Positions 39,301 through 53,414 of a stretch of DNA of 64,000 nt are shown here, piece after piece. The stretch is from positions 186,001 to 250,000 of the forward strand of contig NIVC01001170.1 of NCBI GenBank assembly GCA_002269645.1, written 5' to 3'. The translations under genes and the position numbers were made by a program. The notes under the pieces were generated by a model, which did not search any database, was not told the origin of the DNA, and saw only the letters and a list, made by a program, of their open reading frames with translations. Numbering within the stretch: position 1 is the first letter of the stretch; each line of letters opens with the position of its first letter. Source of the stretch: Macrostomum lignano (taxonomy: Eukaryota).

Positions 39301-40030
39301 CCGGTTCACTCACCCACCCCACTGTCTCTTGCTCGGACTCTCTTCTGGGTCGTGAACTCGGACTCACCCACCCTGAACAATCATAATAAGTTTACCCACA
39401 ATATTAAATCGACCTACAAGCTCACCTTTAATCCTCCTTTAGAAATTTCATCAAATCCCAATCACTGGAATCACAATCCTTCTTGCCCTTACAGTAAATG
39501 TACATGTAATTTCTCACTTACCCTTGTGTACACCTGCTCCACATAAGCTGCATTAAGCAGCGGGTTTTTACAAGATTGAAAGTACATTTTATTAGGTATT
39601 GTAATTTCTATTTTTAGCAACATTCCCAACGGAAAATCTTCTACTTGCGTACTTGCGTGGAAAAGTCTATGCCAGACTACTAAACGATAAGTGACAGTAG
39701 GCTAGTTAGGAAAGTATCGTGATTAATACGCTCTTAAGTGAAACGGTAGGTCACTAAAATAGCCGCTGTGAAAGTTAACAAAAATTTATATAGATATACA
39801 AGACGATGGTGATCACACAAATGTTTACACAAATTAGTTTACGTGTTTAAACCGTTGACACGAGTCACGCAAATGCCCACGCGTGGTTTGCAAGATTTAT
39901 TTGATAAAATTTAAAGGAATAGCCAAGAAATATTTGTGCCAAATAGATCAAACTGACAGGCAATAAAAGCACTTTCTTAGAATTGTGAGTCATCAGCTGA
40001 TGGATGTCAAGAGTTATGCAAAGCTGCATC

Positions 40031-40356
40031 TTATCCGTTCGATCTGACGTTGCCCTTCTGGTCAGACTCTGCAAGTCAGCGGTGTGAGATTTTCTCAGTC
40101 AGGTGCAGCCAAAAACAGGAAATCTAAAAGCAGAAATGCTCAAAGCAACAGCAGTGAGTCACTCACCTCTGACCCGCTCCATCAGGTCCGGATTGGTGAT
40201 GACGCAGCTGATGCTGGGCTGCACGAGAACCCTGGCTGAGGCGCCGACCATTCGGCGTAGCATCGCCTTCGACTCTTCGCTCTCGCCCTTGTAGTAGAAG
40301 AACCTGAACGGGTCCTTGGCGACTGGCCTGGCGGATTTGGCTTGCTGGCTGGACAT
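40031..40356 (-). CDS. Unknown small-protein family, copy 1 (75 aa)
   Basis: Exon 1 40356-40167 (AGAG|gtgagt), exon 2 40068-40031 (ttgcag|AG; ESDQKGNVRSNG*). Confidence 0.75.
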
Positions 40357-40859
40357 TGCTAGCGGTTGAACTGAAGATAATTTGTGCTTAAAACAGTGCG
40401 CTCTGCTTAGGCTTGCTTTTGGCAGCAGAATCTTCTAGATATATATATATATATATATATGTACAGTAGGGCCCAGTTGATGAAACCGGGCAGAATTCTT
40501 TGGGATACCCTCTTATATGCTATTATGAGTCATATTCAAGGTTAGTGTTCTGTTTTTAAGCATAATTTGCAGTCTTAACAGTCTACCCCATCGAGCTTTG
40601 TATGGAATTTCTCGGAGCATACTGCTCGCTGCTCGTTCTAAATTTTACTTTCTAACTTTGGTAGCTCGGCTATTGTGAACAGGGGTAATCTGCCCGCCCC
40701 CATGAGTTTGGCTGCAATAAAATTCTGCAAGACTTCCAGTAGACTCAAGGTAGTTCGACAAAAATATCGGCTACTGGTTCGAGCTTCGGTTTTTGAAATT
40801 AACCCTTGAACTTATTCTTCCGCACACAGAAATGAACTTCCTGACTAAAGTTTGTTCGC

Positions 40860-41325
40860 TCAGAGATTGCTTGAGACCGTCTGCTCAGAGATTGCTTGAG
40901 ACCATCTGCTCAGAGATTGCTTGAGACCGTCTGCTCAGAGATTGCTTGAGACCGTCTGCTCAGAGATTGCTTGAGACCATCTGCTCAGAGATTGCTTGAG
41001 ACCGTCTGCTCAGAGATTGCTTGAGACCGTCTGGTCAGAGATTGCTTGAGACCGTCTGGTCAGAGATTGCTTGAGACCATCTGCTCAGAGATTGCTTGAG
41101 ACCGTCTGCTCAGAGATTGCTTGAGACCGTCTGCTCAGAGATTGCTTGAGACCGTCTGCTCAGAGATTGCTTGAGACCGTCTGCTCAGAGATTGCTTGAG
41201 ACCGTCTGCTCAGAGATTTCTTGAGACCGTCTGCTCAGAGATTGCTTGAGACCGTCTGCTCAGAGATTGCTTGAGACCGTCTGCTCAGAGATTGCTTGAG
41301 ACCGTCTGGTCAGAGATTGCTTGAG
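40860..41325. repeat. 25-bp minisatellite (GAGATTGCTTGAGACCGTCTGCTCA)
   Basis: Direct reading. Confidence 0.95.
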
Positions 41326-42448
41326 ACTCAGCGACTGACTCACTGTGACAGCCTTTCCTACTTGCAGAAAGTGCTTCTGCACCACCGCAACTCCTCTCTG
41401 TGGCGCGGTAAGAGGCCGGCGGGAAAGTCTAATGCTGGTACTTCTTCCTTCCAAGCAAAGTTCCTGATGTCGCGAGGACACAATACTTCCTGCTGGCTGT
41501 TGGCTGAGGACAAGTTACGACTTGGCGAGCAACAACCAAATCGCCACGCTACACCTGGCAGTGAGAACGAGGAAGCCGCTATGGAGGTTCCGGACGGGAA
41601 TGAGCAGCAGCCTATGAATGACCAACAGGAAGCTGGGCTTGCACCGCGCAGGAGCGCGGCGTGCACCTGATTGTTTTGCGCCATGATCTGTTAGTGTTCT
41701 AACTCAATTAATTGTATTGGAGTTCTAACTGACAAGGCACTTTGATGGCTTTGTTTATTCGCTGTGTCGTATAGCAGTCGTAGTCCGTTCATTGCTTTTT
41801 GTTATTACTAGCAAAAGCAATGCTTCATCAAGGCATTGATCACTTTTACTACAGCTTCAAACGGTACTCAACCAAAAATGTCCTAGAAATTTCCTATCAA
41901 GAATTCAAGCACAGGCTCAGTCCCAGTTTATATTAGCAAACCATCAAGCGGCCTGAGAAACGAGGACTGCGAGATCAAAGATACCTTACGAGAACAGGAC
42001 CTCTTGAAAGTGCCATGTGCAGGGTATACAGAGATAAATTCTAAGTTGAATTTTAAAACCCTTACCGTCACTCAAGGAGAAGACGATAGAGACATACGAG
42101 CAATGGAATTTCTAGCAATAGTCATCAGAGACATAAATGCAACTGGTCTCAAGAGCTTCATATTGGCTTCATAAATTAGCGCGGTATTTATACTTTTTAT
42201 TTATTAGATTTCTTGCATTTATACGAAGTGTTTTTCTTTCATTAAGAATATCAAATATATAATTTTATCTAAACAGCACCAAAAGAAATTCTAGTGTAGT
42301 GAGGTACTGAATTCGCTCAAGATTTCTCTGAGCAGACAGACAAAAACGCTTTTTTAAAAGCTTAACTTGGCTCCTCCATCCGAAGCTGTCACTTATATAA
42401 ACAGGCATGACGTCATCAAATCTCGAGCTATCCTGACACTCCGGCCGC

Positions 42449-51372: not shown

Positions 51373-51658
51373 TGAATTTATAAAGACACTTTATTATCTC
51401 AATGCAACAACAAGACTGCAAGGCCAGATTCTACAAGGCAGTGCCCTGTTTCTCCCCAAGCCGAGTGAATTGTGTTAGCCCCAACACGGCACCGGCGTCA
51501 CTCACCGAAATGAGGTCTCAGATAGCGCACAGTGGGACCAGAATACGAGGTAGTGCCCAGTTTCAAGTGGGTTCAATACGCACTGCAGCTGCCTGGGCCA
51601 AGAAGCTTAGACAGTCGTTCGTTAGTTCGCTGTTCACGCCCTGACGAAGGACAGCAAA

Positions 51659-52471
51659 ATGGCTGGTAAGCAACCACGCGATCCGTTCAAAGATTTCTAT
51701 ATGCCAGGTGAAAGCGAGGAGTCCAAGGAGGAGCTCAGGAGAAATACTGCAGCAACTGCTACTCAACTGGTTCAGCCTACGCCGTCTGCAATTTTTACTA
51801 ATCCTGAGCTCATTGCCAAGATTGAAGCAGGTAGAATGCGTTGGTTTCCATTCTGTCCTGTCCTGTCCTGTCCTGTCCTGTCCTGTCCTGTCCTCTCCTG
51901 TCCTGTCCTGTCCTCTCCTGTCCTCTCCTGTCCTGTCCTCTCCTGTCCTGTCCTATCCTGTCCTGTCCTGACCTGTCCTGTCCTGTCCTGTCCTCTCCTG
52001 TCCTGTCCTGTCCTGTCCTGTCCTGTCCTGTCCTGTCCTGTCCTGTCCTGTCCTGTCCTGTCCTGTCCTATCCTGTCCTGTCCTGTCCTGTCCTGTCCTC
52101 TCCTGTCCTGTCCTGTCCTGTCCTGTCCTCTCCTGTCCTCTCCTGTCCTGTCCTGTCCTCTCCTGTCCTCTCCTGTCCTGTCCTGTCCTGTCCTCTCCTG
52201 TCCTGTCCTGTCCTGTCCTGTCCTGTCCTGTCCTCTCCTGTCCTCTCCTGTCCTGTCCTGTCCTCTCCTGTCCTCTCCTGTCCTGTCCTCTCCTTTCATG
52301 TCCTGTCCTGATATAATCCGTTCATTTTTGCACGGATCGACATACCAAGAAACAATCAAACTTATTTCAGCAAAGAAGGAGAAAGCAGAGCAAGAGAAGC
52401 AACAGCAGGAGCAGACTAAGCCAAAATACTCAACCGGAAGTAGTGGGAGCTCCTCTGGCAAAACAAATTGA
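51659..52471 (+). CDS. Unknown small-protein family, divergent paralog (90 aa)
   Basis: Exon 1 51659-51830 (MAGKQPRDPFKDFYMPGESEESKEELRR...TNPELIAKIEA), then a phase-1 intron filled with (TCCTG)n, then exon 2 52371-52471 (AKKEKAEQEKQQQ...GKTN*). The intron sits at the same position and phase as in the other copies. Confidence 0.78.
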   Translation: MAGKQPRDPFKDFYMPGESEESKEELRRNTAATATQLVQPTPSAIFTNPELIAKIEAGRMRWFPFCPVLSCPVLSCPVLSCPVLSSPVLSCPVLSCPVLSCPVLTCPVLSCPLLSCPVLSCPVLSCPVLSCPVLSCPILSCPVLSCPLLSCPVLSCPLLSSPVLSCPLLSSPVLSCPVLSCPVLSCPVLSCPLLSSPVLSCPLLSSPVLSSPFMSCPDIIRSFLHGSTYQETIKLISAKKEKAEQEKQQQEQTKPKYSTGSSGSSSGKTN

Positions 52472-52744
52472 TGATTCGAGCGGTCCACAAATACTGACAT
52501 CAAGCCTTATGGCTCACATACTTTGCTGAATAATATTTGATCTACCATTTAATTCAATTTGGTGAATTCACGAAGTCCAGATAATTGTTTGTGCTTTTTC
52601 TTAATTAGCGACCAAATTTTGCATACATTTTTTACCGAATACAAACTGTGCAAATCTGCTTTAGAATGTTTCCAATTTGACAGACAAAGCAAAAAGGAAT
52701 TATTTGTGATTAAGGGGCCAACAAGCACCTCTGTGAATCTAAGA

Positions 52745-52980
52745 ATCATAGGGTGTCTGTCCTTGAGAATGGGAGCTTGGGTGTCTGTCCTTGAGAATGG
52801 GAGCTAGGGTGTCTGTCCTTGAGAATGGGAGCTAGGGTGTCTGTCCCTGAGAATGGGAGCTAGGGTGTCTGTCCTTGAGAATGGGAGCTTGGGTGTCTGT
52901 CCTTGAGAATGGGAGCTAGGGTGTCTGTCCGTGAGAATGGGAGAGTGTCCGTCCCTGAGAATGGGAGAGTGTCTGTCTGT
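52745..52980. repeat. 28-bp minisatellite
   Basis: GAGCTAGGGTGTCTGTCCTTGAGAATGG units. Confidence 0.9.
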
Positions 52981-53414
52981 CACCCTGCAAATCTCTTGGT
53001 CTTTCCGAATGATTCCAAAGTCATCCATATACTAAAAATGAAAATCTTGCTTGTATGTTTGTACGAAATCGATTTTCTCCTGAATGGCTTAACCGATTTT
53101 CATGAGACTTGCACTGTTCAATCAGAAACAGTGCTTAGAAGAAACAAAAGCGAAAATTGAAGAGCAAAATACTTGCTACGGTCAGTCATTACAGCTGTTT
53201 CTATTTTTACGTAGCTACGAGCGTACTTTATAACCCACGGAATTCCCGCGCTCACACATTGCAAAGTGCGCTGGTTTTTCCGAGGTGCAGCCGAAGACTC
53301 GCCATCGCTTCAGCATAAATAAATTCTGTTCGAAACTTTGAACTCTCATAAAAAAACTGAAGAATCATCTTCTTCAAGAAGCAGCAATTGTTGCAGCAAC
53401 TCAAATCGCTAGCA

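Follow-up and report, generated by a model that had tools for sequence, protein, structure and literature searches.

Perfect MEF2-consensus sites clustered at an array of small orphan genes in Macrostomum lignano

Results

An array of six small orphan genes

The stretch of Macrostomum lignano DNA analysed here (contig NIVC01001170.1, positions 186,001 to 250,000; 64,000 nucleotides, hereafter called the window, from whose first letter all positions are counted) carries six copies of an orphan gene family, and in the promoters and spacers of this array the ten-nucleotide motif CTAAAAATAG, which matches the core consensus of the transcription factor MEF2, occurs repeatedly. Copies A to E are near-identical two-exon genes encoding 75 amino acids (aa), and copy F is a divergent 90-aa paralogue, 47% identical to them:

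40031-40356, minus strand: copy A, ATG at 40356; exon 1 40167-40356, exon 2 40031-40068; 75 aa
42449-42783, minus strand: copy B, ATG at 42783; exon 1 42594-42783, exon 2 42449-42486; 75 aa
44599-44921, minus strand: copy C, ATG at 44921; exon 1 44732-44921, exon 2 44599-44636; 75 aa
47118-47440, minus strand: copy D (P0001), ATG at 47440; exon 1 47251-47440, exon 2 47118-47155; 75 aa
49999-50028, minus strand: distal coding exon of a 107-aa isoform of copy D, encoding MTSFYKFEIL, with donor GTAAGT
51659-52471, plus strand: copy F (P0010), ATG at 51659; exon 1 51659-51830, exon 2 52371-52471; 90 aa
53415-53737, plus strand: copy E, ATG at 53415; exon 1 53415-53604, exon 2 53700-53737; 75 aa

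The distal exon joins an acceptor 66 nt 5' of the copy D ATG (at about 47506), and although the resulting 107-aa isoform (P0004) is annotated only on the homeologous contigs described below, both exon and acceptor are intact in the window. The intron of copy F contains a 10-bp minisatellite. Proteins matching the 75-aa product came from M. lignano alone, and the locus retrieved through it (NIVC01001170.1, assembly GCA_002269645.1) is 100% identical to window positions 37118-57440. The genes at this locus and its homeologs bear the identifiers Mlig011580, Mlig003409, Mlig003009, Mlig001698, Mlig006971 and Mlig032648.

Comparison of the copies makes it clear that the array originated by duplication. 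The DNA of copies A to E hardly differs over exon 1 (190 bp) and the greater part of the intron, synonymous divergence being absent, and similarity to the other promoter classes (see below) ends approximately 10-40 bp upstream of the ATG, a pattern that looks like ongoing gene conversion restricted to the gene body.

An earlier note on this DNA had proposed that the cluster is an array of muscle microproteins. The small size of the products (75-107 aa) agrees with this, but their other properties do not. The proteins are hydrophilic, with GRAVY values of -0.6 to -1.2 and a best 19-residue Kyte-Doolittle window of 1.29, so that hydropathy analysis found no transmembrane segment in them, nor was a signal peptide found. 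An AlphaFold model of a family protein is helical and soluble, with low confidence (pLDDT 69, pTM 0.29). Moreover a profile search against 1.84 billion representative sequences returned no homologue of the family outside M. lignano, a sequence search of the PDB with the family profile gave no match, and no Pfam domain was found in exon 1 of the 75-aa type or of copy F. Two 75-aa family members carry the UniRef name 'TIR domain-containing protein'; since the Pfam scan of exon 1, which covers 65 of the 75 residues, did not find a TIR domain, this name looks like an automatic artefact. Size aside, the family protein shows no sign of a muscle role.

An optimal MEF2-type motif is confined to the array within the window

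The DNA specificity of MEF2, which is conserved across animals, is YTA(A/T)4TAR, with CTA(A/T)4TAG (here CTAAAAATAG) as the optimum. The copies of this motif, their degenerate relatives and the promoter elements around them are as follows:

39608-39617, minus strand: perfect site, reading TGCTAAAAATAGAA in that strand; some 415 bp past the copy A stop codon, in the spacer towards the inositol polyphosphate kinase (IPK) gene
40492-40499: decayed partner element of copy A, AGAATTCT, starting at -143 from the ATG
40520-40529, minus strand: degenerate 8/10 site of copy A, CTCATAATAG, starting at about -173 from the ATG, in the position homologous to the copy B site
42873-42885, minus strand: TATA box of copy B, TATATATTATAGG, about -102 from the ATG
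42906-42913: GGAATTCC palindrome of copy B, starting at -130, 18 nt promoter-proximal to the MEF2-type site
42932-42941, minus strand: perfect site of copy B, -158 to -149 from the ATG, 56 bp upstream of the TATA box
43008-43013: CAGCTG E-box of copy B, 66 bp distal to the site
45014-45022, minus strand: TATA-like box of copy C, CATAAATAA, about -100 from the ATG
45090-45097: GGAATTCC palindrome of copy C in the form GGGAATTCCG, starting at -176, 15 nt from the site
45113-45122, plus strand: perfect site of copy C, -201 to -192 from the ATG, with CAGCTG at 45126-45131, 3 nt away
47540-47549, minus strand: TATA box of copy D, TTATAAATAC, about -108 from the ATG
47595-47604, plus strand: perfect site of copy D, -164 to -155 from the ATG, 56 bp upstream of the TATA box
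47613-47619: GGATTCC, the copy D variant of GGAATTCC, starting at -179 and reading GGAATCC in the promoter layout
48638-48647, plus strand: perfect site between two minisatellites, 1.2 kb upstream of the copy D ATG, in the intron of the 107-aa isoform
50393-50402, plus strand: perfect site in the divergent spacer, 365 bp upstream of the copy D distal exon and 1266 bp upstream of the copy F ATG
50445-51373: (TCTA)n microsatellite, 929 bp, separating the site at 50393 from the copy F TATA box
51378-51387, plus strand: TATA box of copy F, TTATAAAGAC, with TATAAAG at 51379; about -280 from the ATG
53192-53197: CAGCTG E-box of copy E, 3 nt from the 9/10 site
53201-53210, minus strand: 9/10 site of copy E, GTAAAAATAG, -214 to -205 from the ATG
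53239-53246: GGAATTCC palindrome of copy E in the form GGGAATTCCG, starting at -176 from the ATG
53314-53322, plus strand: TATA-like box of copy E, CATAAATAA, about -100 from the ATG

An exact scan of the 64 kb found perfect copies of CTAAAAATAG at six positions, all within 39608-50402, and none elsewhere in the window, in agreement with the earlier note, which had listed the same six together with the 9/10 match at 53201. That note had put the chance expectation roughly at 0.3 per 64 kb; in dinucleotide-shuffled sequences the expectation is 0.19, with a maximum of 2, and none of the 100 shuffles reached six. The occurrence of the motif is thus non-random. One-mismatch copies number only eight in the window against the six perfect ones, despite there being 30 times more one-mismatch variants, and a scan of the whole window for CTAWWWWTAG found no variant other than CTAAAAATAG itself. 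Furthermore, among the 10-mers lying outside tandem arrays, CTAAAAATAG alone has six dispersed copies that are explained neither by simple sequence nor by the five-copy gene body. Including the copy E variant, the seven sites form a homotypic cluster spanning 13.6 kb.

All six perfect sites match the MEF2 core consensus exactly, with AAAA as the core of every one. The extended palindromic MEF2 consensus, as commonly described rather than as a curated matrix, has G/T before the core and A/C after it, and these flanking bases are present at -1 and +1 in all six sites, for which the chance is approximately 0.25^6. In the 9/10 site of copy E position 1 is G, which the MEF2 consensus does not include.

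The sites share a position upstream of separate TATA boxes

In each of copies A to E a TATA or TATA-like box is fixed at 100-108 bp upstream of the ATG, and copies B, C, D and E have a common layout in which the MEF2-type site lies 56-114 bp upstream of this separate box. Measured from the end of the motif, the distance to the ATG is 149 bp in B, 192 bp in C, 155 bp in D and 205 bp in E, which bears out the 150-215 bp given previously. The sites at 39608, 48638 and 50393 lie outside the proximal promoters of copies A to E, and the last of these would sit only about 58 bp from the copy F TATA box if the (TCTA)n microsatellite were absent.

This microsatellite is several-fold shorter at the homeologous locus L002 (about 9490-9725), where the distance from site to ATG is 558 bp instead of 1266 bp, so that its length alters the spacing between enhancer site and promoter. 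We also considered whether the identical 56-bp spacing between site and TATA box in copies B and D reflects a constraint, and rejected this idea, since the homeolog of D has some 40 bp extra and the spacing in C and E is about 101-114 bp.

A palindrome is a steadier neighbour of the sites than the E-box

CAGCTG is the E-box preferred by MyoD, the general E-box of basic helix-loop-helix factors being CANNTG. It occurs 3 nt from the site in copies C and E, 29 nt from the site at 48638 and 66 nt from that of copy B, and there is no CAGCTG within 300 nt of the sites at copy D, 39608 and 50393. Three of the E-boxes listed earlier (45126, 48677 and 53192) are correctly placed, but that of copy B is at 43008 and not at about 42987. 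The pairing of MEF2 sites with E-boxes on which the muscle proposal leaned is statistically weak: CAGCTG lies within 70 bp of three of the six independent sites, and as the 15-kb cluster contains 13 copies of it the binomial P is 0.017-0.06, with thresholds chosen post hoc. Around the site at 48638, CAGGGTAC is 10 nt away, CAGCTG (48677) follows, and TTTTAAATAG is found 62 nt away on the plus side.

The more consistent partner is the palindrome GGAATTCC. It has four copies in the 64 kb, three of which lie 15-28 nt from a MEF2-type site (B, C and E), and when the variant in copy D is included an element of this type is present 8-28 nt from the site in the proximal promoters. The GGGAATTCCG form found in copies C and E is kappaB-like.

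Two other words that recur in this region may likewise be common to the promoters. Of the five copies of CAGGGTA in the window (42020, 47655, 47670, 48658 and 50405), four lie within 75 nt of the sites at copy D, 48638 and 50393, and TACTACCTTGTA occurs only twice (47696 and 50338), both times near MEF2-type sites.

The sites are present at homeologous loci

Two other contigs carry the same array: NIVC01000884.1, represented by the loci L002 and L004, and NIVC01000418.1, represented by L003. The former has seven perfect sites and the latter five together with the E-type variant, and every class of perfect site, including the 39608 type, is represented there by perfect copies:

Site at 39608: L004 10734; L003 175
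Site of copy B: L004 7272
Site of copy C: L002 2541 and 4669; L003 4525
Site of copy D: L002 6784; L003 6768
Site at 48638: L002 7964; L003 7982
Site at 50393: L002 9443; L003 9461
9/10 variant of copy E, the same variant being kept: L002 11155; L003 11130

In contrast to the array, approximately 78.9 kb of non-cluster DNA from the window and the three homeologous loci contains no perfect site.

The motif is exact where the promoters barely align

The promoters fall into three classes (A/B, C/E and D), between which BLAST gives no alignment. Across these paralogous classes the longest shared exact word is the motif; the only BLAST-level matches between classes at the sites are words of 11-14 nt that hold it, and when the motif is masked the remaining similarity consists of short local matches only. 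Three of the flanks had previously been described as mutually unrelated. While it is true that the classes barely align, a module of about 57 bp, including the site, is common to B and D, inverted between the two relative to the gene; B also has the 13-mer CCCAYGGAATTCC in common with C, and CTATTTTTAGC is found in both C and D. As for the asymmetric core, its orientation in copy B is opposed to that in C, D and E.

Taken together, the promoters look like old, micro-rearranged paralogues in which the 10-mer, the GGAATTCC element and the position of the TATA box would have survived while the rest decayed. Since the 10-mer is exact even though the promoter classes barely align, this pattern of survival appears to fit constraint better than neutral hitch-hiking, and argues likewise against a repeat family or a TATA box.

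Other features of the window

The neighbours of the array in the window are a LINE at approximately 16.8-22.2 kb, the IPK gene, a fragment of an LTR-type reverse transcriptase (RT) and some 40 tandem-repeat arrays. The LINE (16847-22187) comprises endonuclease, RT and RNase H, and no record of its ORF2 was found. Within the IPK gene (36354-37958) a (CTGT)n microsatellite at 37041-37160 is in frame with the flanking coding sequence; since the annotated product has 428 aa and the unspliced open reading frame (ORF) 534 aa, the microsatellite is presumably intronic. A direct repeat of 225 bp, 99.6% identical between its copies, is found at 55015-55239 and 62945-63169, the second copy lying about 7.9 kb further along. 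Its first copy starts some 520 bp to the left of an RT/RNase H ORF (55762-57267, minus strand), and the pair may represent the LTRs of a retrotransposon. Finally, in the 23-bp minisatellite at 48730-49905 all three minus-strand frames are open, giving an ORF at 48712-49467 of 251 aa with a 23-residue period; this ORF, which lies inside the intron of the 107-aa isoform, is probably non-coding.

Discussion

We propose, with a probability of about 0.6, that the CTAAAAATAG elements are genuine sites at which a MADS-box dimer of the MEF2 type would bind, and that purifying selection preserves them as upstream activators of the array. Non-random occurrence, the fit of core and flanks to the consensus, the layout relative to the TATA boxes, and exactness both across promoter classes and at three homeologous loci together point to functional sites rather than to duplication alone, and in this respect the view taken in the earlier note, that duplication would not suffice to explain them, gains support. 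From these observations we infer three separate things: binding by MEF2, activation of transcription by that binding, and the tissue concerned. In the proximal promoters of copies B to E, the MEF2-type site would act as an activating element upstream of a separate TATA or TATA-like box; in copy F the same layout would apparently have been split by expansion of the (TCTA)n microsatellite, and the sites at 39608, 48638 and 50393 would serve as additional, enhancer-type sites. As for tissue, muscle is our leading guess, and takes about half of the probability given above. Planarians encode two MEF2 genes, mef2-1 and mef2-2 (PMC9522251), and our literature search found no work establishing a role for MEF2 in flatworm muscle, nor any describing MEF2 target sites in flatworms or in M. 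lignano.

Several observations weigh against this proposal. Short flanking words are shared between sites, namely CTAAAAATAGCAT by B and D and CTAAAAATAGAAC by 48638 and 50393, and since the AAAA core is also the same throughout, the six sites are not fully independent events: common descent contributes to them. Copies A and E keep intact genes although the site is lost in A and, in E, has C replaced by G at a consensus position. The homeologous promoter blocks are 95-99% identical around most sites, so that conservation between homeologs is not specific to the motif. Moreover a 2016 review of planarian muscle treats what Mef2 genes do in myogenesis as still to be answered (PMC4744845), and a flatworm multiome study gives TEAD2, Stat5b and NR4A1 as examples of motifs more accessible in muscle than in neurons, MEF2 being unmentioned in its main text (PMC11398382).

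The alternative that survives best is a variant of our proposal rather than a departure from it, and its probability is contained in the 0.6: the sites would be functional and of MEF2 type, but would serve a programme outside muscle (stress, immune, neuronal or gut), in which MEF2 would cooperate with a Rel/NFAT-like or TEAD-like factor binding GGAATTCC. We regard this as a real possibility, though one well short of an even chance. In Drosophila MEF2 functions in the fat body, and in vertebrates it does so in neurons and lymphocytes; the array, for its part, is lineage-specific, tandemly amplified and composed of genes for small hydrophilic proteins, a profile common among stress and defence effectors. 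In favour of this variant too is the steadier partnership with GGAATTCC, which lies 15-28 nt from the site in three of four copies, with GGAATCC in D, as compared with the E-box near three of six sites; one source, moreover, names a family member 'TIR domain-containing'. Pfam, however, does not reproduce that name, and the proteins have neither a signal peptide nor a transmembrane segment. Furthermore TEAD motifs are associated with muscle in flatworms (PMC11398382), which would draw the GGAATTCC element back to that tissue.

A less probable explanation, and in our view an unlikely one, is that the sites are neutral relics of tandem duplication, a promoter module having been copied, inverted and shuffled, with the motif left intact by chance and without present function. 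The array clearly arose by duplication, and the identical core, the inverted B/D module and the words common to B and C and to C and D are what such a history would leave behind, as are the CTAAAAATAGAAC word of 48638 and 50393 and the CAGGGTA near both. But the promoter classes cannot be aligned beyond short words, and under neutrality a 10-mer should rarely survive intact in six lineages; against six perfect copies, the cluster contains just one of 9/10 (E) and one of 8/10 (A), and the differing orientation of the core in B versus C, D and E is not explained by simple colinear descent.

It is more improbable again that the match to MEF2 is coincidental, the motif belonging to another factor or being an AT-rich, TATA-like core-promoter element for alternative starts. 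The motif is AT-rich, contains TAAAAATA and lies 150-215 bp upstream of the ATGs, and at 48638 it is followed by TTTTAAATAG in a region where the plus strand has no annotated gene. A TATA box, however, reads TATAWAWR, has one orientation and stands some 25-35 bp upstream of the transcription start, whereas TAAAAATA and TATTTTTA deviate from this consensus at well-conserved positions and the element is found in both orientations relative to the genes. Better TATA boxes exist at -100 to -108 in copies A to E and at about -280 in F, and the invariant outer CTA...TAG with its G/T and A/C flanks suits a MADS dimer and not the TATA-binding protein. We therefore rejected the motif as a TATA box, given the separate boxes at a fixed distance from the ATGs and the two orientations. 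Its interpretation as the promoter of a non-coding RNA gene was likewise rejected, as the window has no Rfam match and no tRNA match.

Finally, it is very improbable that the motif belongs to a family of repeats or mobile elements scattered in numbers through the M. lignano genome. This genome is very repeat-rich, the window itself containing the tandem arrays, LINE and LTR-element fragment described above, and TACTACCTTGTA and CAGGGTA blocks recur near some sites. Yet the flanks lack extended homology, no flanking repeat pair surrounds the sites among the repeats listed, Rfam and tRNA searches gave no match, and perfect copies are absent from the approximately 78.9 kb of non-cluster DNA in the window and the homeologous loci, on three contigs.

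Returning to MEF2-type sites under selection, a broader suggestion can be made tentatively, and we consider it more doubtful than not: the whole array of Macrostomum-specific small soluble proteins may be wired to one compact module, consisting of the site, GGAATTCC and the TATA box within about 100 bp, with selection keeping the module while gene conversion would homogenise the gene bodies.

M. lignano is a flatworm in which stable transgenesis has been reported (PMC5730564), and since the promoter is short and contains an exact, mutable site, the proposal is directly testable in this animal. The promoter of MYH6 has been validated there as muscle-specific (PMC5730564); the 99-aa ORF that opens this promoter fragment has no annotated protein. 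If the array proved to be muscle-specific and dependent on MEF2, it would provide cis-regulatory evidence for a MEF2 myogenic programme in flatworms, of which we found no report, as well as a promoter, about 250 bp long, with which transgenes could be driven specifically in the muscle of M. lignano. More generally, if the sites work they offer a compact tissue-specific promoter and a case in which a lineage-specific family has been recruited under an ancient transcription factor; if they do not, the locus shows that micro-rearranged promoter modules can mimic selection.

How, then, does the array compare with known systems? With the MEF2 sites of vertebrate and Drosophila muscle genes it shares the optimal core, six times over, the G/T and A/C flanks, a position tens of bp upstream of the TATA box, the use of either orientation, the presence of several sites per locus, and a CAGCTG next to the site in C and E, two other classes having one no more than 70 bp away. 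It differs in belonging to a flatworm, in that the putative targets are orphan soluble proteins of 75-107 aa and not contractile or metabolic muscle genes, and in a statistically weak partnership with the E-box next to a steadier one with the GGAATTCC palindrome.

In the Drosophila fat body the targets of MEF2 are immune and metabolic genes, whose MEF2 sites lie near kappaB-type sites and TATA boxes. The array resembles them in consisting of small tandem genes with a site close to a kappaB-like palindrome of the GGAATTCC type and a TATA box, but here the site stands apart from the TATA box instead of overlapping it, and the proteins have no signal peptide.

To the muscle micropeptides of the sarcolipin, phospholamban, myoregulin and DWORF type, the family is similar in encoding fewer than 110 aa, and in control of MEF2/MyoD type only on the reading of the earlier note. 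Those, however, are single-pass membrane peptides, whereas the M. lignano proteins are hydrophilic and have no sequence similarity outside this species. Whether or not they work, the sites are a regulatory annotation of a known type, of which this array is a new instance, and not a new kind of system.

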